Assembly (NCBI GenBank): GCA_964199315.1
Contig: OZ116703.1
Location: forward strand, 8,866,001 to 8,930,000
Direction: 5' to 3'
Source of the DNA: Orbicella franksi
Lineage: Eukaryota
Length of the DNA: 64,000 nucleotides
The translations under genes were made by a program, and so were the position numbers. This document shows, one piece after another, positions 7,230 to 55,500 of this stretch (positions within the stretch are counted from its first letter, which is position 1; each line of letters opens with the position of its first letter). Under the pieces are notes generated by a model. It was not told where the DNA came from and did no database searches. It saw only the letters and a program-made list of their open reading frames with translations.

Positions 7230-7437
7230 CATATGTTGATGATAATTCTGCTGTCGAAACACCACCATTTGTCCTAGATGATATACTTTGGATTCTTGTG
7301 AACAGCGTACTCGACGATATACTTGGCAACACACTTGAAGCGAAGCCTGAACTAAGAACAGAGCTTGAACTGGTTGCGTCCAATTTCGCCGCAAACAAAA
7401 CAACTAACACGGCAAAACCTCTCCATAACAGGTCCAT
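7230..7437 (-). CDS. First coding exon (signal peptide) of the mucin-like gene
   Basis: ATG at 7437, MDLLWRGFAVLVVLFAAKLDA (hydrophobic signal peptide) followed by an S/T-rich segment. The donor G|gtaag at 7230/7229 is phase 1, matching the phase-1 acceptor at 4312 (G+CA = Ala). Confidence 0.85.
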
Positions 7438-8369
7438 ACGAATCCTTATTTCGCTCGTAAACTGCCACATTACGTTTGACTTTTTATCCGGTTCATCTGG
7501 ATTGGTAGTACAGCTATTCGTTCACTTGGAAATTAAATATGATCGTTGCTTTCAGGCTGTTTTGCGACCGCCATTTCCATAATTCCATGACAACCATGCT
7601 CTGTTGCATGCCGAAAATAGCCCGACGAGGTCATGTGATCTTTTCCGATATCTAGTTCAAAAGTGATTTATCGTATATGTTCCTTTGTGCCGTATCAGTC
7701 CCATATTACTATATTTCGGTATATCGAGTTTTATAACTGCAAGGATTCACTTTTTGTAGTTATTTCAAAGCACTTTATCAAAAAAAGAAAAAAATAATAA
7801 TTTCGACAGAAACAGTCACGCAACAATTCTTGCATGACGAATAATTGTAAACCTAATTCCCAGCTTTTCTCTCCTAGGCTTCAGATTGAAATGAATGAAT
7901 TGATTTCTCTCTTTTTCCAGCCGTTCTTGAGGGACAAACGCGCAGGGAACCATTTTGAAAGCACAGCTTTTGTATTTTGTGCTCGCACTTCACGTGACTG
8001 ATGCCAAATTGTCTATAAGTTGCATACCAGAGCAGTGACGTGTCATCAGTCACGCAAGGACAAAGTGATCGATTACTTGTGAATATTTTTTGCGGAGCAT
8101 CAAGATATTACATTGCCATTGTTCGCCGACATCAAACTAGCATTTAACAGGTGGTGTGACAAACTTCATTTTAGATCTGTTTTCACCTGCTCTCATCGGG
8201 CATAAATATTTACGCGGGTGTCTTCAATACAGCGCCACTACCGTAATCATGGGGATCGGCACAGGCAGATTGTTCATCCATTCGATTCGACCATCGATAA
8301 CGAAATGTCCTCAGTTCGAAAGCGTTTGAGCAGCTATGGACAGCCAAGCTAGTGGTTTTGGTCGACAAA

Positions 8370-11300
8370 ATGGAGATTTTCAAGGATCTAAGGATTCCTC
8401 TGCCAAAAACGTTCGAGTCGCCAAGCCTAACTCGCTTAGGAAAATTTCAACGCGGAATTTTGACAGCCGCGCTTCTTGTGATACCCACGTTGCAGGCGAT
8501 CTTGTGGCAGCGGGAGCAAGATCATTTTAGTTCTGAATTTCGTTGTGGAGTAAAGGATGGAGATGTCGATAGCGCTGTGAGCGAACGAGAGGACCTTACA
8601 TTTCAGTTCTTCCAAGACTACACGAACAAATACAGCGGCGTTTCGCAGGGAATGTTTGTAATTTTCGTTTTACTGAATCTAATAATCGTCCATTTCTACA
8701 TGTCCTTTGTCTCCGATCGATTTAATTCGTGGCTCAAGCTTAGGACGACAAAACAGCGTGGCAAAATTCTAGCCGAGTTGAAGGGTTCGACTGCTGTGTT
8801 TAAAGCTCACTCTATTCAACTCGGCCTGAGGTTGATGTGTGCCGTGATCTTTATTGTTTACAACTGCCTCGCGCACTCAATTGTCTTACCCACGGAGAGG
8901 GAATATCTACCTTTCGACGCAATCTCGTTCGCTACTGCAGTTATATGCTACGCTGATCAAGCTTTCGAATCATCAATCTTTAATATAGCTTTGTTGACCT
9001 TTGCGACATTTTCTGGCACTCTGAATTTGACTGAACTCGTCTATACTTGGCAAGAAACGAGCGCCTTCGAGCGAATCTCAGACTATTATTTCTGCACGCT
9101 TTTGTTACGGCACAATAGCGTGACAGAGTCCACTAATATGCTGATAGAGAAGGAATTGTTCTTGGAAAAACAAAGGGAAAAGATACGCGATAAAAAGAGG
9201 CCAACAGTCCAACTACCACTGATGAAGTCTAGTAATGCAACAGTGCACAGTATCCCTTGTAATTTATTCATCTCTCAGCAGAAACTGAAATATAGAGGAG
9301 TTAAGAAACAGAAACACAAGCAAGAATTATTCAGAACTTACAGCAGAACTAAAAAAATCCCAGTTCGTTCGCTTGAGGACTTGTTAAAACCGAATAGAGA
9401 CTCGGCGACACCGAAGAGAATCCTTGTAACCGGGGCAGCGGGAATTGGAAAAACGGAGCTCACATTGCAGCTTGTGGAGCAATTCAATACTGCAGAAAGC
9501 GGATTTTGCAATCTTAATTTTGTTTTCATTTTCAATTTCAAAGAACTCGCTTTTATCGATAATCTCATTACTTTGCAAGACTTTCTTAATCACTCGGCTT
9601 TTTGTTCGAGACTGGGGGACATTGTGTACCGGAAGATTGCGTCAAATCCAGAAGAGGTCCTCCTTGTTTTTGATGGCCTCAACGAGTGGACTGTAAAGTC
9701 GTTCGTACAGCACACCTGCACGGGAGGAAATGAAGAGAAAATGACCGTGTCTTCTATCGTCTTAAAGCTTCTTTCCGGAGAACTTTTACCGGAATCAACT
9801 ATCATTGTCACCTCGCGACCAACACCCTTGCTATCGGAGATAGTAGAAATGGTGGCATTTGACCGGTATGTAGAGCTTGGTTGCTTTAAGCCAGAGGAGC
9901 TCAAGATCTACATCCAAGAGTTTTTCCAGCACAATAAAGAGCTTATCGCCACAGTGAGAAATCGCATTTCCAGCGAACCGAATCTTCAAGTTCTTTGCCG
10001 TTTACCTGAAAACTGCCATCTACTTTGTTTGTACTTAGACTTCGTGGCCTCAACGAGAACGTCACAAGAAGTCCAATCTCTCGAGTTACCCTCCTCGACA
10101 ACAGAAATCTTCGGGAGATCAATTGACACAGCAACAAACGCAGAATCCGACCAAAGTGAACACAAGACATTCCCATCGGATCACGTTATTTTCTCAAAGA
10201 ACTCTCTAGAAGTCTTCGAAAAGCTCTCGTGTCTCGCTTTTGAAGGAATAATGAACGAAAGGTATGTCTTTAGAAAAGAGGATCTCTCCCATGTTGAACT
10301 TAGTGCATTCGAGGCTGACTTTCTTGAGGAAGCTGGCCTTTTATGTCGCTCACGAGGCAATCTACTCAGACAAGCGGACGTATATTGCTTCAGTTGCCTT
10401 TCAGTCCAAGAGTATCTTGCCGCCAGAAGAATTGTTCAGTCTTCCTCTATAGGCGATTTGCGGGATTTTCTGGAAAAAGCCAACGAGAATCACTGCGCTA
10501 CTTTGCAATTCGTGGCTGGGTTATGTAAAGATGGAAAGGAAGGCAGGGGCCTTTTTGTGTGCTTGATGCAGCACTTAACTGAAGCTATCAAAGTGAACAG
10601 CTTTGTCCACGAACCAGTGATCGATAACCAAGCAATCATTTTTCTCTGCAAATGCCTCTTCGAAAACGGGACTAAACTGGGCCATCCTTTCGCAAGAGAA
10701 GCAACCTCTTCCATATCGTCAAAGCCTATCGTCTTCACAGAAATTGGCACGGACCCACTGGAAACACAAGCGATTCTTTACTGCTTGAAAGAGGCCATTG
10801 GGAGCAATGTAAAGAGGGTCATCTTCGAGAGCAATGCTATGGAAGACGACGGGTTCCGTCAGGTGGCCACCTCCATCTGCGAGGAGTCCTGCAAGTTGGA
10901 CCAAGTTAATCTGACAAGCTCAGGTATCACAGAGGACGCTATGCTGTCGTTCCTGGAAATAAGCGCAAGCCACTCTTTTCTTGGAATAAAGATTCTCGGG
11001 CTGAGAGGCAACGACATCTCAAGCGAGGGGGCGAGATACCTTGCGTGTTTGCTCTTCAACGACTGGTGCCATTTGGAAGAACTCCATCTTGGCAACAACA
11101 GAATCGGCGATCTGGGTGTGGAATATTTCAGTGAAGCCCTTTGCAGCGGAAGCAGCAGAATTCACACTTTAGACTTGAGTTCCAATGGAATAACCCACAA
11201 CGGTGTTTTCCACCTGAGCAGGGCTCTCAGAAGTCCAGTTTGTAATGTCAAACGACTGTACCTTCAGAAGAACAAAATTCTAGACTTCGGCATGCAAGAT

Positions 11301-11684
11301 CTCTGCGAATCACTTTGCACGGCAGATTGCAATCTAAGGGTCTTGTTCGCAAGTTCCAACGAGATCACTGACGACGGAATCATGTTTGTGGAAAAGGCTC
11401 TGGCACACAAGTCTTGCAACCTACAAGAGCTCTACCTTGGCTACAATCTAGTAACTGACAAGGGTGTTAAGAGTTTGCTGCAAGCATTGCCTACTCAGCA
11501 AATCAACCTGAAGGTTTTGTCCCTGGCCAACAACCCAATAACGGATGTTGGTGTGAAAATGCTGGCCCATGCCTTGAGAAACTCAAGCTGCAATCTACAT
11601 CGTCTTTGCATAAGTCTAGGAAGGCCACAAGTGGCTGCCACCAAGGCTTCGAAGCTCCAAGTACGATACGTTAATGCCTTCTAA
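8370..11684 (+). CDS. Intronless NLR-like protein: N-terminal 4-TM connexin-like domain, NACHT NTPase, RI-type LRRs (1104 aa from ATG 8370)
   Basis: Uninterrupted ORF 8352-11684 with first in-frame ATG at 8370. Walker A GAAGIGKT (9432-9455), Walker B LLVFDGLNE (9660-9686), sensor-1 IIVTSRP, LCRLPENCHLLC, WHD FSCLSVQEYLAA, about ten 28-aa LRRs, and four N-terminal hydrophobic helices. Confidence 0.93.
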   Translation: MEIFKDLRIPLPKTFESPSLTRLGKFQRGILTAALLVIPTLQAILWQREQDHFSSEFRCGVKDGDVDSAVSEREDLTFQFFQDYTNKYSGVSQGMFVIFVLLNLIIVHFYMSFVSDRFNSWLKLRTTKQRGKILAELKGSTAVFKAHSIQLGLRLMCAVIFIVYNCLAHSIVLPTEREYLPFDAISFATAVICYADQAFESSIFNIALLTFATFSGTLNLTELVYTWQETSAFERISDYYFCTLLLRHNSVTESTNMLIEKELFLEKQREKIRDKKRPTVQLPLMKSSNATVHSIPCNLFISQQKLKYRGVKKQKHKQELFRTYSRTKKIPVRSLEDLLKPNRDSATPKRILVTGAAGIGKTELTLQLVEQFNTAESGFCNLNFVFIFNFKELAFIDNLITLQDFLNHSAFCSRLGDIVYRKIASNPEEVLLVFDGLNEWTVKSFVQHTCTGGNEEKMTVSSIVLKLLSGELLPESTIIVTSRPTPLLSEIVEMVAFDRYVELGCFKPEELKIYIQEFFQHNKELIATVRNRISSEPNLQVLCRLPENCHLLCLYLDFVASTRTSQEVQSLELPSSTTEIFGRSIDTATNAESDQSEHKTFPSDHVIFSKNSLEVFEKLSCLAFEGIMNERYVFRKEDLSHVELSAFEADFLEEAGLLCRSRGNLLRQADVYCFSCLSVQEYLAARRIVQSSSIGDLRDFLEKANENHCATLQFVAGLCKDGKEGRGLFVCLMQHLTEAIKVNSFVHEPVIDNQAIIFLCKCLFENGTKLGHPFAREATSSISSKPIVFTEIGTDPLETQAILYCLKEAIGSNVKRVIFESNAMEDDGFRQVATSICEESCKLDQVNLTSSGITEDAMLSFLEISASHSFLGIKILGLRGNDISSEGARYLACLLFNDWCHLEELHLGNNRIGDLGVEYFSEALCSGSSRIHTLDLSSNGITHNGVFHLSRALRSPVCNVKRLYLQKNKILDFGMQDLCESLCTADCNLRVLFASSNEITDDGIMFVEKALAHKSCNLQELYLGYNLVTDKGVKSLLQALPTQQINLKVLSLANNPITDVGVKMLAHALRNSSCNLHRLCISLGRPQVAATKASKLQVRYVNAF
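8418..9053 (+). other. Four-transmembrane connexin-like domain
   Basis: SLTRLGK, WQREQ..SEFRC, LGLRLMCAVIF and VICYADQAFESSIF..TLNLTELVY align by eye with Cx26 STSIGK, WGDEQADFVC, FFRVIFEAAF and VDCFVSRPTEKTVF..LLNVTELCY (Cx26 sequence recalled from memory). Confidence 0.75.
9414..10440 (+). other. NACHT NTPase with HD1/WHD subdomains
   Basis: KRILVTGAAGIGKTELT, FVFIFNFKEL, VLLVFDGLNEW, IIVTSRP, LCRLP, SVQEYLAA motifs in the expected order. Confidence 0.92.
10806..11620 (+). other. Ribonuclease-inhibitor-like leucine-rich repeats
   Basis: Repeats of the type HLEELHLGNNRIGDLGVEYFSEAL, NVKRLYLQKNKILDFGMQDLCESL and NLQELYLGYNLVTDKGVKSLLQAL, spaced about 28 aa apart. Confidence 0.93.
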
Positions 11685-12321
11685 ACGAAGGGTTCTCGTA
11701 GAACCAACAGGAAAACGGCTCAATCTTGAAACTTCCTGTTTGTAGACACTACGTCAAACGTTTTCCCAGTAAGCAGTGTCTTTCCGGATAAGAACCATTT
11801 TTGCCATCAGACCTTTCGTTTTTATTGGTCACCAAGGTTTGCATGCCCCACCAAATTGCCCCAGCCAAACGAATTTGGTGACCCTTTTTACCATTGTTGC
11901 TACGCGTTTGACAATACGTTATTTTGTACTATTTGTAGCCCGGCATAGATGTCATTTTGGATCACAGACGCTTAGCGTTTCGAATTTATTTTGATTAGTA
12001 AAGCCCTCGATTCAGTAATTACAGGTCATATTAGCGATACAACGAATTCTTTCAAAAAAACAGAATTTCTTTTATAGCTGAGGGTTTAAATGAATCTTTA
12101 GCAAATACCTTTAAGATACGCATTGTTATATCTTATCCTGAAGTATCGCTTAATTCAGTCACTGGAATTTAAAAAGCACTAGATTAAAACCAATGTCATG
12201 ACTCTAGAGTATTCAATAAATTATTTTTTGCTGCAGGTGAAGCTTCCGTTCCCCCGTCCTACTGCTAAATAAATAAAATAAAATAAGTTAACACGTTTCA
12301 CGGACGTTGTGTGGCATTCGT

Positions 12322-15300
12322 TCAGAAGTAATAAACGAAACCGTCGCCTTGAGCATCATTTGCTCCTGGAAATTAAGTTAGGTACAGATTAATTTTTGTT
12401 GTCATGAAGCTCTTTAGAGCCTCTGATTTCATTGGATCTTGTTAGCACGAAGCTCTATTGTTTTAAGCCTAGGGTCCATTGTTACTATTGCTCGTATAGC
12501 ATTTTCTCAGCCAATCCTGTGAGACGTTCCGAGGAACTTCGTTGCGATCCATGAATTCGGAAGCAACACCCCCTTCAGGCTAGTGTCCATCCGCCATCTT
12601 GAAATGAAGTTCGGATATCTTTGGGGAGAAACGCTGCATTGATTGTTAGTAACATTGATTGGCCGTTGAAATTACCCGAAAGGAATGCCCTCTGTTATCT
12701 TGCCTGACGGAAGGATTTAGGGCCTGTTTACAAGGAGAGAGGGTTACCCTAGCAAGCGGGTTACCCTAGCACTCAGACATTTCCTCTTTTTATTTCGTCG
12801 TGTTTACAAGGCAGCTAGGGTTACCCGGGTAGGCGGGTTACTCTATCTGCGTGCCTAGGGTTACCCTGGCAGGCGGGATAGCTTTTACCATTGTAAACAC
12901 TCCAGGTAAGGTTAACCCGCCTCTCCGGGTTAACTTTATAATTGTTTCTAGATCCTTTGAGTGTAACTGCGCACTAAGTTGTCCCGCGGGATGTAGGGTT
13001 ACCCTACCTGTGAAATTTCCTTGTAAACCCGGGCTATATTTTGCCCTCCAGCTAAGGTTAACCCGCTTGCTAGGGTAACCCTCCCTCCTTGTAAACAGCC
13101 TTTAGGGGTCCTCTGTTTTAGTGAGAAAACTGAAGAATCGGAGGCCGCGGCTGAAGGTCGCCTTCCGGTACAATCTCACTTACAGCTATGTTGAGAAGGT
13201 CTAGCTTAACTTACCAACAACAAGAACTTGAATTTCGACAGTGTCCTCTGTTTCTCTGGGTCTGCCCGCTTTCCAGACCACTGTGCACGAGTAGCTTCCT
13301 TGGTCGCCTCTCTCCACCCTAGCGATTGTTACAGAGCCACTGTAGAGATCAACAGACTTTCCTTCCATGGGGAGAGTCATGGGCTGACCACCTTTCCGCC
13401 ATTTGTATTTCAGCGGGGGGTAAGCGGATACCCCCAGTTCAATCACTCCAATCTCGCCGAGTTTCAGCTGTTGTGGTGTCTTCACACCATGACTTACAAC
13501 TGAAAAAAAGATGACAAATACTTTAAAGTGCAACCTCGATATAACGACTAGCCAAAAGACGGCATGGCAACTGACGTTCGCTATAACGAGGTTTTGTTAT
13601 ATCGCTGTTCTTTACCATATATTTACTATTCCTGGGGCGAAGAATATCGTTTTTTATACCGAGGATTTCGTAATGTAGAGGTTCGTTAAATGGAGTTTCC
13701 ACTGTAATTGGATCCAATGTACCAGGAATCACTTTGATTGCTTTCCCTTCGTGTAGGCAAAAAATATATAATTTAGAAGAGCCAGTCCCTTGACACGAGG
13801 AATAAATAATTAAAAGTCACTTTTTGAAGGAAATTTAGTCAGAATTCTACTATAAGTATCAGATTATTCGCTCTCAGTTTCTATGAGGTGATGGTTGATT
13901 TGGCCTTGAGCTTCATCATTCGCCTGCGTTAGAAATATCGAGCTCATAATCTAACTGTTTAGCAGGCCGTCCATCTTTCGCTATCGCTGCGAGCCTGCGA
14001 TGGCTTAATATCTTCCACTTACAGTCGACGTCAAGAGTGAAGCTCTCTGATTGCCTAGATCCTTTGCAGTAGTATTTTCCACCATCTCTGACTATCACGT
14101 CTCGAATTATCAAAATGTAGTCGTTTCCAGTCCTTTCGACGCTTAGTCGTCCAGAGCTCTGTTCCAGTGTAATATTTCTGCTCTCAATAGCTGGTTGTCC
14201 AAGACTGGCTTCCCTAGAGGGCGTTTCCCAGGCAAGAAAGGTCTCTCCTGTGACATTGCATTTGATCCTTCTGGTTCGAAACTGCTGTGCGGTGATTCTT
14301 CTGAACGGGAGGCTGACCTCAGCACCTAAAAGGTGAAGCAGTCTGCTGTTTGGAATTTATCTAAAATACGACTAGCACAGAGATACAGAATGGACGCGTA
14401 GGTCATTTATCAGTTCTTTAGCACATACGTCGATCGTCCGCAAACGGTCGCCATCTTAAGCTCATATGAAGTTCATGCCTTGTTCACTCTCCTTCGTCAC
14501 CAGGAATTTTGGGTATATTTCGCGAAAAAAAAACATAATTCACGAACAAAGCGAACCCTCTCCAAAAATTCGCCGAGTTCTGTACAGGCACCATGTTGTG
14601 ACGTCATGATGCTATCAAAAGTGGTAATTGTGCTGGACTGTTTAAAATTACAAAACGATAAAAGTGACTTAGTTGTGGCCAATGTACTATAGCCATTTTG
14701 TTATTACCACCTTTGATATTAATGTCAAATTTCTTTGTGCAAACGATATGCGGCAAGGCAATGAGCATTAAACAGAACTAAGATACTTTGTGCTGATAAA
14801 CCCCTTTACAACTCCGTACATTGCCATATTAAATATATGAACTTGAAACTCCATAACTTTTTAAATAATGTTGAGACGAATCTGCAATCGATAACTCTAA
14901 CCCCTGGTTTACGGTGAACGTTCAGTTTTCTTCCCATAGCCACCTCAGCTATATGCAAAAATATCCTACTTTAGTATATACCACACAAGTGAATAGTGCT
15001 TTTCGCCCACTCTGATTGGCTAACTCCGAGGTGATTACTATTCACCTCCACTTCGGTAAATAATTGTTAATGATAATCCATCGAATGTTCTTGCTCGCGA
15101 GCTATTGGTTTTAGGGACTGTGCAATAATTACCTGGGTGGGGGGGGGGGGGGGGCTGGGAAATGGCTGAAATATGCCCCAAAACTAAGTCATACCCCATC
15201 TCATTAAGTAAAAATTAACTTCAACCCTCCCTCACATAATGATAATATTAAGACTATCCCCCCCCCTTGAAAAAAGTCCCCTCCCATTGATTCCGTCATA

Positions 15301-21196: not shown

Positions 21197-35655
<14,459 letters not shown>

Positions 35656-46568: not shown

Positions 46569-49500
46569 TCACAGCAATCTACCACGACACTCCGCTGACC
46601 CACAGTAGCAGTGTAAAACTTTGCCTTTGACGCTGTCCACTTCGTACGCGTAGTCCCAGGTTAGCTCGGTTCCAGCTGCAACGTTTCTGGAGAGGAACGG
46701 GAAGAAAGAAGTTAATTTACATGATGACGCGATCAAATTAGACTTTAGCAGACTTTTTTCTCGAAGAGCGAGAAGATATAGACGCGAGATTTTACAAATG
46801 ACCCTGGACGTGTACCAACATGGCTGTTCCAGTTGGTTTGTACGGTGACAAAAACAAGGTACTTTCCACTTCCCTATGAAAAGTATAGGTAATCGTATCC
46901 GTGCGAGTGCAATTTATTATTTGCACTTCGAGTGATATTTGAGAATTCCCTCAAAACTGCACGAGCCTTCAGGTGAGTCCAATTTGGAAGGATCTTCAAA
47001 CATCACGAGTAGTGTATATCCTTTACTGGTCGAGCTTTCATACGATTGTCATTTATTATATGACTGAGAAAATTTCGAACACACCACCATTAACTTACAC
47101 TGCAGTACGAGGTAAAAATCATCGATAAATGGCCAATCAGCCTCTCAGCCAATCACAATGAGGTATATTTCTTAGTCATATAATAACAATCAAAACAACA
47201 TGGACTAAAATAACCTCCATGTCCACAGTCACTTACTGTTGAGTGAAGAACGCCACCCAAGGAAATCGGAGGTCATGAGTGTCTACAAACACATTCTGGA
47301 CAAACAGGTTTGGCGAGCAGCTATGCTGTTGAAGCAAACACAAAACTGGTTTATCAAACAGGTTTGGCGGGCAGTCGTGCTGTCCAGTCGCAATGAAAAC
47401 TTGCTTAGTTTCGTACATTAAAGAGATGACACATTTTTTTCGACGACGAACGCGTGGAAAATGGAAAACAATCGAATTCTCTTTTAGAGGGTAGACAGCA
47501 AATAACAGTATAGGATTTAGAAAGTGTTAGAAAACAAACAGTCGACACGTATCTCCACAAAGTATTAAATTGAAAGAACTAAGGTTAACCAAACAAAGCA
47601 GTAAACAACACATTATTTCATGAAAAACAGTAAGTTAACAAACTCACATTTAAATATCGCCCACAGTTCCCGTAAGCCTTTGCGTCGATGACGTAGCAAT
47701 GCTCTTCTCCAAACATCAACCTCGTGCTCAGTCTCTTGCTGCTAGCAGAGGACTGGCGTGACAGAGAGGGGCGTGAGGGCGAGGGAGTGTTGGGTGAGGC
47801 TTTTATCGAAGGACTGGTGCTAGTGGGTTGAGAACGAGAGTAGTGAATCTTGGGCTTGTTAGCTGAAAAAACAAAAAAGAGAAAATCCGGCACCACAAAA
47901 GTTACTAACTTAAAGAAATTTCTACAATGCAGAGCTATTCTAAGGATGTTTACTTGGGTAACTTAGGGTTAGGGTTAGGGTTTTTGAAAACAAAACTTCA
48001 GTTTGTTCGTCTTTATCTTCTTAATCTTACAGTGGATTCAGGTTGAGAGTTAAACGCTCTCAGGTGTCTCAGGTCGTTGTAATGGTTGATAGCGTTGCAA
48101 AGCAAAAAGTCCGACAAAACTTGGAGTTCTGTCCAGGAAAAAAAAGGCGTGTTCACTAAATAATAAACAGCGATTCCACAAATCGGCTGGGAAAATCATT
48201 GACGACGTCTCGCGCCCTCTTTAAAAGCATGAATCACAGCATTTCTTCGATCAGAAGATGAAGATTTTTCTGGCAGGTGAGAGTGACTACTCTTGGTTAT
48301 GGCCCACACTTGGAAACGTTCCAACGCGCCTTTTCCGAGACAGAATGTTGTCATCCCCGCAATGTCATTCCCACAATGCATCCTCCCAGATCCAAGATGG
48401 CGGACGACTTGAGAGGGGATGAAAAGTCGCTTTTGAAAGGACGAAATGGTGGTATTACATGTTGCGTCTCCACACGGTTTAATAATTCAAGGAGAAACGC
48501 TGAGTTTAATTATATTTTCCCGAAAGAGCCTGCATTGTGAGAGAAGTGGATAGAATATATCGAGAGACGAGGCACCCAGTATGTTCTGCACGCTTTGCAG
48601 GTGGGAAGAAAAGCTACGTGAATAATGTAGAAACCGTATTTGCTGACTGTGCATTTGAATTGTTGCTGTAGATATAATTAAGTGTGAGTTCCGAAACCAG
48701 CAGATTTCAGAGGGCAAGCCTCCGTCCGCACTGTCCGCTTTCTTGGACTGGACTTGATGAATACATCTGCCATGCAAGCGCGCCTCGTAGAGGGAAAGGA
48801 CCGTTGGTGTCATTATATGGATTTTGAAATTAAAAACAAGGTGAAACTTCTAAGAACAAAATAGTCAAAGACCTCAGACTTCAGTTCAAAGATAAAGGAC
48901 AAATCAGACAAATGAATCTTACTTTTTAACTTTTTCGCCGGCGGCTTTGACACCCCAGTGCTTCGTTTAGAGCTTCCGGTTGAAATCTCCGACTTCCGGT
49001 CTAAAGACTCGGGCTTTGAAACGTCCGAACGTAAACTAGACGGCGAAGGCGGAAAAGAATCCATGTTTTCTGTCTCTGGAGATGAAGGCTCCGATATAGG
49101 TTCAACCCGAATACCCAAAGCATTTTCTACGCTGGGGGATTTTTCAGTCGAACTTTTGTCGACATCATCCGCAATCGACTGGTCTAAGTCCATTGGCGTC
49201 GGCCCATCCGTTCCATTCACACTAGAGTCCGAAGAAGACGGATGAGCCGTGAGAACGCGTTTAGTTAACCGTGAAATCATGTCCTCTAGCGTGTTTGAAA
49301 CCCGACGAGTGGGATTCATTTTAGTTAATACAGGCGGTTCGTCCGCCACTGTCGTGTTCTTCGCAGCCAGTTTAGAGAGATCTTCTGCGGAGATGAGAGA
49401 AGGCGCAGAATCCGAATCCTCAACCGGTTTTGCAGCGCTCTCTGATTTATCCTGTTTATCAGGTTTTTCTGGTTCGACCGGTTCGGGTGTAACCCTTCCA

Positions 49501-52500
49501 TGTTTGATATGAGGCTGGAGATCTGTTTTCTGAGAAGCTGAAATTAAGTCTCTATCTTTGAATGTTGAAATTCCTTCAACATCAGCTTCTGTATCGCTCG
49601 TTAACACAATAATTTTCATATCGTTTCCTCCTGCAGAATAAGCAGGTCTGCCCTTGTGTGTATCGTCCTTGTCCGTTATAATCCTCGCCGTATCTGCCTC
49701 GTTGTCTACTGGTATGTCCTGGGAGGTGTTGTCCCGCATTTTCTGGCAAAACGACTCGTCGACTTCATCGAAATCAAAGTCACTGCTCTGACTGATGTTC
49801 TTTTCTTCGTCATCTACGAAAAAAGCAATAAAGTTACACATTTAGGCATTATTTCACCACAACAGGATAATTATAAAGAAAGCTTTCCCTTTGTCCACTA
49901 GATTCCCTCAATAACTCGCCATTTGCCACAGCCATTTCACTGTCATTTCTTCGTCTCTCAACCCAAACACTGAGTCTGGATTTCAAGCCTAATTTTATAC
50001 ACTTACATAAAAACAGGCAAAATAAAGTTAAGATGTCTTGCCACGGCATATGCTTACTAGCCAGTCTCCGATGCCATTAGCACGTATCTGGAGTTCAGTG
50101 CCCCAATCACCAGACCACTGCGCCCCACTAACGTGATATTTCACAATTAGATTATGAGCTTGATATTTCCATGGGCACCCTCGTCAACTAACACGCATAG
50201 AAATCGAGAGTGAATAATCTAATTATTTTAGTATAAATCTACTAGGCGTTCAGAATTATATCTAAATTCTCTTCGCAGACACTTTGAAAACGAAAAGAAG
50301 AGGCCGCCATTTTGTTAACAAGCGCACACTGCTGGGCTACTCGAATGGATAGTGAGTAGCGCAGCCAATCAGAGAACGGCATTCCTGATAGAACGCTAGT
50401 AGATTTATATTAAATATCTACAGAAATGCAAGCAAAGCAGCATTAATTTCCAAGTTGTTTATGAGTTCAATTTCCATACTATAAACTCGAATAGTAAGAT
50501 AAGGAGCCAAAAGCTCCTAGGAAACCTCATCCGTTCCCCCCCATCGTTAAACGACACCACATGACTCTAAAAACAACAGAAACAAGGTTGAATTTTCGCC
50601 GAGGTATTTACCTCTCAACTGCTTAACACTCTCCGCATCTTTCACATCTTTTTCATCCCTTTTTACTACAGCTTCTTTTGTCATCACGACGGTTTCCGCG
50701 CCTGACTGGACACTAATCTTTCCAGTCCCTTCACCCGTCATCTTTTTCAAAAAGGCGGCTGCAAGCTTCTGGTCGTCATGGTTACGCTTTAATGCTATGT
50801 AACACCTAGAAGGCAAATATTAGTAAAATGCAATGCAAGTCAGCGGATTTGGATGTAGAAAAAGATGTAGTTCGTTTACAAAATGTAAACAGAACTAAAT
50901 GCTGCAAGATTAAAATCGTTTAAACTAATCGTGGGAGAAATTAATGTAATAAACGATTTTGCCTTATTTAGTTTAAAATAAGCTTTTATCTCTTTAATCG
51001 CGGCTGGCGCTAGGACGGGGTTGAAACATGCCCTCATACAACATTTCACTTTCAACTTCTCTCCAGCTCGAATGCAAACTTGGTACCACTTAACGACCCT
51101 ACAAACGCCTGTTTTTTCGCTGTTCTCAAATTATTGAAAAGTTTCTCCTCTGCAAAGAAAGACAAACTTCTAACTGAAGAAAGCGTTTGTTAATAGAACG
51201 TGTGTCACTATCGCGATAACAATCCTGCGGCTTATATTTGGTGGGCTTGATATTATTTTCGAGAGGGTGACACTCGCTATCGAAAGGAATTTCCGTTTCG
51301 AAAATATTTGAGGTTAGATTTGGAAGGGATTAGTTTGCGTATGGAAAATTAACAGTATGTGGATATCGCCGGCGGGTTACTCTCGCCTGGATTTTACGGT
51401 ATGGACAGATATCTGTCACGACTAGAAAGGCGTTTCTTGGCGAACGATTATGTTCGTAGTAGTCTCTGAGGCACACTACGCCGGAGGAATTTGAAAACGT
51501 AACAATCACCGGCCATTTTGGACTTGTGTTTGAGGAAAACTCGGTCTGGGAAATCACATGATTCCCGTGATGCCATCGTTTTCGAAAAGCTATATTTTCA
51601 ATTGTTTTCCGTCCACACTGAAACGCAAAGCCGGCGTTTCAAATTCCTCAGATTTGAAGAGCGTTTTCGAAAAGTTCCGTTTTCGTTACGGATTAGTGCG
51701 GACGATAAGGCCTAACCGTAGAAATAAAGTTGCGTTTTCAAATTCCTCCGGCGTGGACGGAGAGGCGAACGTGACACAACAAATATCTGTCAAGAAATGG
51801 TTCTGGAGACTATATTTAATAAATACGAAAATTAAACTTGCCATTTTTCATCCGCAAGGTGTGATAAACAGTGAGCTTTAGACTCTCTTTCAACCATCAA
51901 CGTTTCCTCTCCTTGTACACCGCTGTCGTGGATATTAAACGCAAATAAATCGTGTTTACAATATGGAACTCAGTTTCAGGAGTTGCTTTCACAAATGAGC
52001 CTCTGAGAGCGGCAAAAGAGAACTGACTACACAATCACCGAGCATTCTGGAATTCCTTTTGATGTAATTATTACAAACCATGTGTAGTTCTAACCACCGA
52101 AGGAAAAAAATGTGCTGACTTAGCAAATGCTACCAGATAAACGAGTCAGAAATGGCGCGGGTAACTATGAAAACAAGGACTCTTTAACGGCAAGATAAAA
52201 GTAATATAGAATACGAAACGAAAGAAAACTAAAGAAAAGAAAAGAAAACAAGAGACCAACAAAAGAAAATTTTTCCTACCGTTTTCTCTTTTCGCTTTTC
52301 CTTCCAGATCTCTGTGGAATAAAAAAAAGCACAATACTTTGATCATTTTCTGATCAATAAGGCTTGTTTGCTAATTGCCTTTAAAAAGAGGTTGAGAACA
52401 TTTTCTTTTCAGTTCTTCAAGGCCCAATGTTTCAGTTAGACAAAACCAACCTTCATCAGGGACTTTGAATAAAATCTGATTCAAACATACTTTACTCTAA

Positions 52501-55500
52501 TAACCCCAGAGGCCGGTTATCCGTGAGTGCTAGGTTCAAAACAGACATTTAACTTGAACACAGTTAACAGAGGGCAATGGTTATGACACCCTACTAAGAT
52601 CTTTGCTCTAGGTTTTTGCTCGCTTTTTCGGCCTTGACCGTGCACAAAACACAATAGTTGTGTACTTTTCACTGAGGAACAAACCAATAGCAACGTTTCA
52701 GTTACGTAATTCATACATAGTGTTTGAGCGCAAAACAGAAGATTGTGCACGACCGTGGACCTTGATATCTTTGTTTGCTCCTTTGATGTAAGCCTAAAGG
52801 AGGGTTTATTAACCACTCCCCTCTATTAACCTCTGAAGAAGGAATTTGATCCCAAACCTGCATCTCGTCAGTTTTAACAGCAGAAACACTCTTACCTTTC
52901 GCTTGTTTCTCCTGGATGATTTGTGGCTGTTATGTTCACTATCACCGTGCCTCGAGTTTCGGCCTGAACTGTAACTCTCCTCACTCAATAGGGAATCCAC
53001 TTCCGAAGATTCATCTTCTGATAACGAACTGCAATTAAAATGATAACAATACGAGCAACAAGATTACTTTCAAAAAAGGACAAGTAACTAGGATAAGACT
53101 TATTCAAAATTTCAAAATCATTCCCTGGTTAAAATAACCAGAGAAGCGTTTAATTAAGATTACTTTGTTACCGTCTTTAGTGCAGAGTGCACTATTGGGA
53201 TGGTTTTGGGGGCGGCTGTTAGCTAAACCGCTAAGTTAGGCCTAGTTCACACTTGGGGCATAACGACATAGTTACATAAACACAACGACATAAGAAGGAC
53301 GTTGTGTCGTTATGTTTGCAGTGTGAACATCCTGACATAATGGCATGATAGCAACATAACAGTATGAACATACCGACATAAGGAAAAAACCTGATCTTTC
53401 CCTTATGTCTTTATGTTGATGTCCACATTACCAACATAAGCGTTTATGTCGTTATGTCGTTTCTGTCGCTACTGCGAACCAGGCCGTACTAACGAGCCAA
53501 GGTGTAAATTTTAATGTTGTTGTAATTAATTAATTCCTACTAATGCGGTAATGTTTTGGATACTTTCGCCATTCGCACGTCAATTCCTACNNNNNNNNNN
53601 NNNNNNNNNNNNNNNNNNNNNNNNNNNNNNNNNNNNNNNNNNNNNNNNNNNNNNNNNNNNNNNNNNNNNNNNNNNNNNNNNNNNNNNNNNNNNNNNNNNN
53701 NNNNNNNNNNNNNNNNNNNNNNNNNNNNNNNNNNNNNNNNNNNNNNNNNNNNNNNNNNNNNNNNNNNNNNNNNNNNNNNNNNNNNNNNNNNNNNNNNNNN
53801 NNNNNNNNNNNNNNNNNNNNNAGTCTCTCGGCAAGAATGTGGTAGGGCTGGGGGTGGGCCAGGTAACTGTGCGCACTACGTAAACCGAATTGCACCAACG
53901 CTTCTCTCTCCCTAGCATCACAAAATTACATCTCTGGTTCGGAAAACCCCGTGCTGTCGTTGTTGAGTACAGTGAAGGCTCTTACCTTTCGCCGCTATTT
54001 CCTGAAGCACTGGCTGAAGAACTGCTGTCGGCGCCCAGCGTCTGATAAATAACACTGTCATCTTCCTCAAGGTCCGACACATTGGACTCGTAGCCTTCCT
54101 TGGCTTTTTCCACGACCTCTGTAATAACAATCCAACAGATTACAAAGTTCACTAGGAGCTCTTTATAGAAGATTTCACTCGAGGAGCAATAGGGGACTTT
54201 AGCACGCCCGTTTTTGAGACGCGGACGGTAGCCGGAAGTGAGCTACTTTCACTTTTAACTTGTCCTCACACAGCCATATTCACATTGCTAAGTATCTTTT
54301 CTTCATTAGAGATGAGTAGTATAAAAAATCTGGGAGACAATACGGTCCTAGCATGCGAAATCTTCTCTTCCGGTTGCCGTCCGCGTCTCAAAAACGCGCG
54401 TGCTAAAGCTCCCTAATGTCAACGTCATGAGGAGCAATGTCAAGGCATTCTTTTTTAACTTGAACATTGCCTTAAAAATGTGTATACTCTTTTTCTTTGG
54501 ACATTGCCTTCAAAAAGGATTTTCTTGTTTTAGAAATTTGGACATTGCCTTCATTTTTTTTCCTTCAAAATTGGATATTGCCTTGAAAAACAAAAAACAG
54601 AAATATGCAACTAACTGGATTCACAAGTTGAAAAATTCACTTTACCTCTTTCAAGATTCGCTATTTAAGGCATGAAGGCTTCAGGCCTATTATACTCACT
54701 ATGACGTAAGCAGTTAGCATTATGTGACACTACGTTAATTTATGCAAGAGTGTCATTGGTTCTCCTCTGTTGTAGCCTCACCTTTACGTCTACATTGGGA
54801 CTTGGATTGAATACATTCTACTCACCGATATGGTCCAACTCCGCAAGATACTCGTCTCCAAAATCTCTTCCCTCCTGCCAACAAGAAGGGGAAAAAGGTT
54901 TAACAACCAGCGCCAGCAAGTAAATTATCTTTATTGGTCTCTTCCTTATAAGTGATGCTTTGGAGGATCGAAAAAAACTTTAAGTTGAGGGCATTCTCAA
55001 ACAATCGCTTAATAATATTTAAAAAGTGCGAAAACGAAAAAAGAAGAGACAAAACAAGCAAGCAAACAAACGAAAATCAAGGTCATGGTTAACCAAACCG
55101 AAAGACGAATGCCTAGCACTGGAGAATATCTTGAAGAATTGCAAACCGTGCTTTTCAAATCGTAATAGGAATACGGAAATTGATGTCATGTTGTCACCAC
55201 TTACTTACATCTCCTTTGAAACCTTTTTTCTCCTCTTATAAATCCAAAGCGAAATATTTCTTTTCTGTTTATGTAGTCCCCCAGTCTTACGGATATCTCA
55301 CGTTTAAAAAATATAAGCATTTTTAAGACAGAGTGAAATGAAATCACGGATTCCAACCTTGTTAGCCATGTCCTCGTTCAGAATTTGCCCAGCATACGTA
55401 CAGACGAAGGTTCCCATAGGAATGTCATCCAGAGATCGCAGTCCCCATCCCCTGAAAAACCAAACGCGCAAAACAGTAAGCACAAGAGTAAACACAAGAG

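Follow-up and report, generated by a model that had tools for sequence, protein, structure and literature searches.

A coral gene that joins a connexin-like domain to a NACHT-LRR receptor and probably encodes a hemichannel

In a 64,000-nucleotide window of the Orbicella franksi genome (assembly GCA_964199315.1, contig OZ116703.1, positions 8,866,001 to 8,930,000), a gene on the forward strand encodes a protein in which a connexin-like (CxL) domain with four transmembrane (TM) segments is followed by a NACHT NTPase domain and leucine-rich repeats (LRRs), i.e., by the body of a nucleotide-binding, leucine-rich repeat receptor (NLR). The gene is interpreted here as a stony-coral CxL-NLR, whose product is a divergent connexin homologue that probably acts as a hemichannel and carries its NACHT-LRR part on the predicted cytosolic side of the membrane. 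The identity and architecture of the protein are observed in the window itself, and its channel function is proposed by analogy with relatives described in a preprint. A first-pass annotation, made from the sequence alone, had described a connexin-like channel domain fused to a NACHT-LRR receptor and had left aside whether such a connexin assignment was already published. Both the assignment and the gene family are already published, and an orthologue of the window gene is in the published set.

The anthozoan CxL-NLRs were reported by Butler, Aniol, Hillman, Nijjar, Dale and Smith in a bioRxiv preprint of June 2026 (10.64898/2026.06.13.731801). The authors found CxL domains in anthozoans, an annelid and a brachiopod, the domain standing at the N-terminus of the anthozoan NLRs; 92% of the anthozoan CxL proteins carry a NACHT domain, their genes are typically single-exon, and an HHpred search with an anthozoan CxL profile matched 6L3U at 99.95%. 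Expressed anthozoan CxLs, some with the NACHT domain attached, localised to the plasma membrane of HeLa cells. The CxL hemichannels released ATP and glutamate on depolarisation, some of them also on a raised partial pressure of CO2 (PCO2), and the proteins formed no gap junctions and gave no dye coupling. Three NACHT-bearing or otherwise fused relatives were found to conduct, the fused domains leaving channel activity unblocked. Connexin domains at the N-termini of cnidarian NLRs had been annotated earlier, according to references 32 and 33 of the preprint (10.64898/2026.06.13.731801). The orthologue of the window protein in Acropora cervicornis (P0020, UniProt A0AAD9QQB8), which is 56% identical over the whole N-terminal domain, is retained in Supplementary Table 1 of the preprint with IPR038359, NACHT and LRR, a length of 1107 and Filter N (10.64898/2026.06.13.731801).

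Transcript and architecture of the fusion gene

The features of the gene are listed below in window coordinates, with the evidence for each.

8075 to 12154, forward strand: minimal extent of the transcript, an unspliced mRNA of about 4.1 kb (polyA RNA-seq contig)
8370 to 11684, forward strand: complete single-exon coding sequence of the CxL-NLR, 3315 nt, 1104 residues plus stop codon (list of open reading frames, ORFs)
8370 to 9065, forward strand: connexin-like four-TM domain, residues 1-232 (Pfam, profiles, AlphaFold2 and hydropathy)
9048 to 9404, forward strand: juxtamembrane segment and linker, residues 227-345 (conservation among orthologues)
9405 to 9932, forward strand: NACHT NTPase domain, residues about 346-521 (Pfam NACHT at 350-521, E = 3.8e-21)
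10212 to 10316, forward strand: NOD2-type winged helix, residues 615-649 (Pfam NOD2_WH, E = 3.1e-6, above cutoff)
10809 to 11681, forward strand: about 10 ribonuclease-inhibitor-like LRRs of 29 residues each, residues about 814-1104 (Pfam and repeat period)

The window DNA is eukaryotic, and its best protein matches all come from stony corals, the named ones being Acropora and Desmophyllum. The ORF from 8352 to 11684 is a single frame without interruption. Its ATG at 8370 has a strong initiation context (A at -3, G at +4) and encodes the Met that is also the start Met in NCBI/RefSeq and GenBank orthologues from Acropora; residues are numbered here from this Met, and the numbers used in the first-pass annotation are higher by 6. 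The orthologues are equal in overall length and 51-98% identical across the N-terminal domain (residues 1-260). A second CxL or NLR copy was sought within the 64-kb window and none was found, showing that there is no tandem array there, and an exact look-up of the contig encoding the A. cervicornis orthologue, made for synteny, gave no match.

The receptor part of the protein has all the elements of an NLR (a NACHT carrying the two Walker motifs, then a winged helix, and LRRs at the C-terminus) and bears out the first-pass claim that one ORF holds a whole NACHT followed by about 10 LRRs. A motif search found both Walker A (GAAGIGKT at residue 355) and Walker B (LLVFDGLNE at residue 431) intact, and the NACHT domain is apparently competent as an NTPase. 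The LRRs were matched by Pfam LRR_6 in 5 stretches (E = 3.2e-19) and by LRR_4 (E = 1.3e-12), and were counted with a regular expression and the 29-residue period from residue 814. Between the membrane domain and the NACHT, residues 227-265 are 80% identical among the orthologues, with W227, E229, T230, Y239, C242, L245, L246, N249, V251 and E262 invariant in their alignment, and this juxtamembrane segment is a candidate coupler of pore and NACHT. The Pfam family PF27087, carried by all homologues, was suspected of being a model of the membrane domain and was ruled out as such, being the LRR family LRR_TMOD-LMOD. A search of NCBIfam returned nothing informative.

The locus is nearly complete in many RNA libraries. 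A polyA contig of 4080 nt from run X2 covers 8075-12154 without a gap, differing at 2 positions, and a contig of 4124 nt from run X5 aligns to 7921-12044. No joints were found inside the gene; the contigs span the membrane domain, the NACHT and the LRRs colinearly and without a splice. The membrane domain and the NACHT-LRR part are thus transcribed as one unspliced mRNA, and the fusion is real; splicing of the TM region away from the NACHT, which the first-pass annotation had named as a finding that would speak against its proposal, was not seen. The 5' untranslated region (UTR) measures at least 295 nt and the 3' UTR at least 470 nt. Three ATGs lie in the 5' UTR (at 8249, 8305 and 8336), none of them in the reading frame of the main ORF, and may be regulatory upstream ORFs.

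It is extremely improbable that the fusion is an artefact, whether of misassembly, of a faulty gene model or of a pseudogene, with the membrane domain and the NLR not forming one protein. ORF lists and RNA contigs by default cannot exclude carry-over of DNA, and no positive support for an artefact was found. The 3315-nt frame is uninterrupted, and 25 homologues from independent assemblies, most of about 1100 residues, share the same architecture, with RefSeq models in three Acropora species. In addition, the RNA contigs extend about 300 nt past the start of the ORF and 470 nt past its stop before they end, the depth of run X2 is close to zero in the flanks (7674-8047 and 12162-12348), and the sparse stranded raw reads have their first mates on the minus strand, consistent with RNA from the forward strand.

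The connexin assignment

Three alignments were used, one of the orthogroup of the window gene (A1), one of standalone coral CxL proteins (A2) and a joint coral-only profile (A3). The CxL domain consists of a charged N-terminus, TM1 (residues 30-46), loop 1 (47-92, containing C59), TM2 (93-114), a cytosolic loop (115-147), TM3 (148-171), loop 2 (172-200, containing C193) and TM4 (201-226). Hydropathy resolves three of the helices clearly, TM4 lying under the threshold used, and beyond residue 300 nothing of comparable hydrophobicity occurs. An AlphaFold2 model based on the 37 sequences of A3, with a predicted local distance difference test score (pLDDT) of 70 and a predicted TM-score (pTM) of 0.62, places helices at 22-50, 93-126, 142-168 and 198-232 and gives both outer loops beta structure, as short strands at 58-61, 176-179 and 191-194; C59 and C193 are the sole outer-loop cysteines, and each falls in a predicted strand. 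Lysine and arginine together number 6 in the N-terminus, 8 in the middle loop and 25 after TM4, and both outer loops are acidic, a distribution that fits cytosolic N- and C-termini. The predicted topology is therefore that of a connexin, with four TM helices, both termini in the cytosol and two extracellular loops, in agreement with the four hydrophobic helices and the orientation of the first-pass proposal. A first AlphaFold2 model, built from 19 close orthologues, was poor (pLDDT 56.5, pTM 0.38) and was replaced by the A3-based model; its Foldseek matches were already large-pore channels, at E >= 5e-3.

The only Pfam family matched by the N-terminal domain at E <= 10 is Connexin (PF00029), with an E-value of 0.0022 and 18.2 bits, residues 138-226 aligning colinearly with positions 138-223 of the 225-position profile. 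The same family was matched at E <= 1 by 10 of the 19 orthologues, none of them over threshold, and neither Innexin (PF00876) nor Pannexin_like (PF12534) was matched at E <= 10 by the window domain or at E <= 1 by the 19 orthologues, a HMMER outcome in line with the connexin identity proposed earlier. A single-sequence phmmer search of the domain against the PDB gave no match. The A1 profile, searched against 1.84 billion representative proteins, obtained 6 matches at E <= 1e-3 and reached no chordate connexin directly, indicating that the orthogroup is isolated in sequence space. The coral protein P0030, matched by A1 at E = 1e-5, is one of a family of short, standalone proteins from corals, and PF00029 is present in many of these. 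An hhalign comparison of A1 with the alignment of standalone coral CxLs (A2) gave 92.3% probability and E = 5.5e-7; the aligned part covers 216 columns and runs from the initiator Met as far as TM4. Searched against the PDB, A2 matched Cx31.3/GJC3 (6L3T) at E = 7e-5 and otherwise only connexins, and the joint profile A3 matched 32 sequences at E <= 10, all 32 of them connexins, the best (Cx31.3) at 2.3e-4. In the alignment of A3 to Cx43, profile positions 25-229 correspond to Cx43 residues 30-235. Profile similarity to solved connexins is thus found via the broader coral alignment, and the neighbours of the domain in a protein language model are connexin clusters, with a score of 0.94.

The first-pass annotation had based its assignment on a series of short connexin landmarks, and these were compared with Cx43, Cx36 and Cx31.3 by HMMER profile alignment. 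In loop 1, the FRC falls on the first cysteine of that loop in Cx43 and Cx36; in TM3, A-Y/H..Q-L..R aligns with AYVAQLGARL of Cx31.3. C193, with the (E/K)..F that comes after it in loop 2 and TM4, aligns with VDCFLSRPTEKTIF of Cx43, and the TM4 motif L-x-E-L-v-Y aligns with NIIELFY of Cx43. These landmarks are taken as homologous. The proposed equivalence of SLTRLGK and the STSIGK of Cx26 lies where the alignment scores weakly (domain E-value about 160) and is not statistically established.

Structure comparison placed the domain among the large-pore channels. A Foldseek search of the A3-based model against the PDB gave 77 matches at E <= 1e-3, and large-pore channels make up all 50 of the matches listed, with Cx36 first (5e-5), followed by pannexin 1, LRRC8, Cx31.3 and Cx43. 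Among the AlphaFold models of Swiss-Prot, the top 30 matches are all connexins. These matches, together with the chain of profiles leading to solved connexins, support the connexin assignment of the first-pass annotation, which had named a lack of profile or structural matches as evidence against it. VIA-align Z-scores are alike, at about 12, for LRRC8, Cx32 and the pannexins (model pLDDT 70), and the connexin assignment therefore rests on sequence.

A different origin, in which the membrane domain is of the pannexin, innexin or LRRC8 lineage and its connexin signal is a convergence within the large-pore fold, is very unlikely. LRRC8 chains do give the top query TM-scores (0.53-0.56) and the top VIA Z-score (12.5), pannexin 1 stands second in Foldseek, and LRRC8 likewise joins a four-TM pore to cytosolic LRRs. 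Against such an origin stand the empty Innexin and Pannexin_like searches at the thresholds given above, the PDB sequence matches of the coral profile (32 of 32 connexins) and the top 30 Swiss-Prot fold matches. Clustering in the preprint also ties the CxLs to connexins and not to innexins (10.64898/2026.06.13.731801).

Several results weigh against reading the domain as a connexin-type hemichannel. The Pfam score of 18.2 bits is below the PF00029 gathering threshold of 31.3 bits. The A1 profile alone found no solved connexin in the PDB, its one match there being a photosystem peptide that came up by chance (E = 1.1), and the connexin signal therefore depends on the broader coral CxL alignment; the orthogroup is about 20% identical to the standalone coral CxLs. 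The latter have two conserved cysteines in each outer loop and the orthogroup has one in each, C59 being the first of loop 1 and C193 the last of loop 2 by comparison with the coral CxLs and with Cx43 and Cx36. The position of the second loop-1 cysteine is occupied by Phe, His or Tyr, that of the first loop-2 cysteine falls in a gap, and the three cysteines per extracellular loop of connexins are not present. The lysine of the KLFxAY motif aligns with Ala142, which is Ala in 15 of the 19 sequences. The N-terminal 24 residues are modelled at pLDDT < 50, and the modelled structure indicates a large-pore fold that by itself does not separate connexin, LRRC8 and pannexin. Reduced cysteine counts are also found in the epsilon-clade connexins, and KLFxAY, listed in the supplement as KLFLAY and KLFIAY, is the cnidarian carbamylation motif of the preprint (10.64898/2026.06.13.731801), by whose criterion CO2 gating through position 142 would not be expected.

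Conservation, possible function and surroundings

Mean identity among the 18 orthologues is highest of all regions in the LRRs (83%), followed by the segment after TM4 (80%), the cytosolic loop and TM4 (75% each), the N-terminus (72%), the NACHT (61.5%) and loop 1 (47%). The N-terminus, cytosolic loop and TM4 are thus better conserved than the NACHT. For a pathogen-facing receptor, such slow evolution of the LRRs is unusual, and it suggests that they have a partner which is itself conserved and may be endogenous, as opposed to a pathogen ligand that evolves fast. In loop 2, around 8885-8900 (residues about 175-178), 6-8 residues (consensus R-KQWTP) are missing compared with all other orthologues, and the same short form is present in the RNA contigs and in the partial protein P0026, which has the same sequence. 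A divergent CxL-NLR of 1092 residues (P0027, at L001:240-3518, forward strand) has a CxL domain 29% identical to that of the window protein; it lies on a 4-kb metagenome scaffold of the European Nucleotide Archive (ENA), showing that the orthogroup or a sister group reaches beyond close relatives.

By analogy with the expressed relatives, the CxL domains would form a hemichannel in the plasma membrane, probably hexameric or heptameric, which would not dock into gap junctions. The cytosolic face of such a hemichannel would bear a ring of NACHT-LRR modules, gathered beneath the membrane by oligomerisation of the pore domain. The ligand or nucleotide state of the NLR and the gating of the pore might then influence one another, as the cytosolic LRRs do in LRRC8 channels. 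A stronger proposal is that the NACHT-LRR part is a cytosolic gate, in which an LRR ligand or nucleotide exchange at the NACHT opens or closes the hemichannel. We put this forward tentatively and consider it somewhat unlikely; if true, it would make the protein a sensor and channel in one polypeptide, turning an intracellular danger or metabolic signal directly into release of ATP or glutamate.

The main rival to the hemichannel is that the domain of this divergent orthogroup descends from connexins and has lost its pore function, serving only as an oligomerising membrane anchor that holds and pre-clusters a conventional NLR at a membrane. This we judge unlikely, although the divergence of the domain, its score under the Pfam threshold, the single cysteine per loop and the lack of the carbamylation lysine would all suit it, as would the better conservation of the LRR and juxtamembrane parts than of the membrane helices. 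In connexins, the N-terminus lines and gates the pore. The N-terminus of the window protein, at 72% identity among orthologues, retains an invariant ESPSLT before TM1 and four charged residues among the first eight, and a plain anchor needs neither. Charged N-termini have been tied to voltage gating, and the three NACHT-bearing or otherwise fused relatives still conduct (10.64898/2026.06.13.731801).

The surroundings of the gene hold a few further features. A separate transcript contig from run X5 (6772 nt, depth 25.8), aligned to 7300-7862, stops at 7862, just upstream of the CxL-NLR, showing that an expressed neighbouring gene reaches further than 7300-7862; around 7603-7607 the contig is polymorphic for an insertion of 18 nt. 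On the other side, roughly 1 kb past the gene, a short element at 12714-12860 reaches word depths of 266 to 1360 in the RNA libraries, with numerous loose ends flanking it and rearranged joints within it, and looks like a dispersed repeat or a piece of an abundant RNA. On the minus strand, an ORF of 274 residues at 34810-35634 matches Pfam Pkinase (E = 2.4e-31, profile positions 1-164 of 263) and is probably one exon of a kinase gene, and two long ORFs, at 21197-22834 (545 residues) and 48813-49841 (342 residues), lack any Pfam match at E <= 0.001. At 53591-53821 there are 231 consecutive N, either an assembly gap or a masked stretch.

Comparison with known systems

For a long time, connexins were regarded as having arisen within the chordates, and NLRs as sensors that are soluble in the cytosol. 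The coral fusion of a connexin-like pore with an NLR overturns both of these views and suggests that large-pore channels and innate immunity may share an ancient connection. NLRs coupled to a membrane-permeabilising N-terminal module are known from the plant CC-NLR resistosome (ZAR1) and the fungal HeLo/HELL-NLRs, in both of which oligomerisation is central. In the ZAR1 and HeLo systems, the N-terminal helices do not form constitutive polytopic domains but enter the membrane only upon activation, and they have no homology to connexins.

The overturning of both views had already been argued in the June 2026 preprint from sequence, structure and electrophysiology (10.64898/2026.06.13.731801). 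The present analysis confirms the finding independently in a single orthogroup that is divergent and well conserved, and its RNA data establish the fusion as real. For the choice of constructs, it adds a single cysteine pair, the loss of the lysine at the proposed CO2-sensing position and highly conserved LRR and juxtamembrane segments. The CxL-NLRs of the preprint and the window gene share the order CxL-NACHT-LRR, a single coding exon and an anthozoan host. The proteins expressed there were pmCxL30, pmCxL62, edCxL50, plCxL60 and dpCxL52, and the orthogroup of the window gene is not among them. It differs from the standalone coral CxLs in its loop cysteines (1+1 versus 2+2), in the Ala at the KLFxAY lysine and in the identity of about 20%.

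Among channels of known structure, LRRC8, the volume-regulated anion channel (VRAC), is the best structural match to the window protein (Z 12.5, query TM-score up to 0.56) and, like it, combines a large-pore four-TM domain and cytosolic LRRs in one polypeptide. However, no sequence-level relation between the two was detected in Pfam or PDB profile searches; LRRC8 also lacks a NACHT, has a pannexin-like pore domain and occurs only in chordates. Vertebrate connexins, e.g., the hemichannel-only Cx31.3/GJC3 (6L3T) and Cx43/GJA1, share with the window protein the four-TM fold with both termini in the cytosol, beta strands in both loops and the positions of the FRC cysteine, the TM3 A-Y..Q-L..R, the last loop-2 cysteine with its (E/K)..F and the TM4 L-x-E-L-x-Y, and their genes are likewise single-exon. 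In contrast to them, the window protein scores below the PF00029 threshold, has one instead of three cysteines per loop and a longer loop 1 (about 46 residues), and, by analogy with its CxL relatives, would not be expected to dock into gap junctions; in place of the regulatory C-terminal tail of a connexin, it carries an 870-residue NACHT-LRR.

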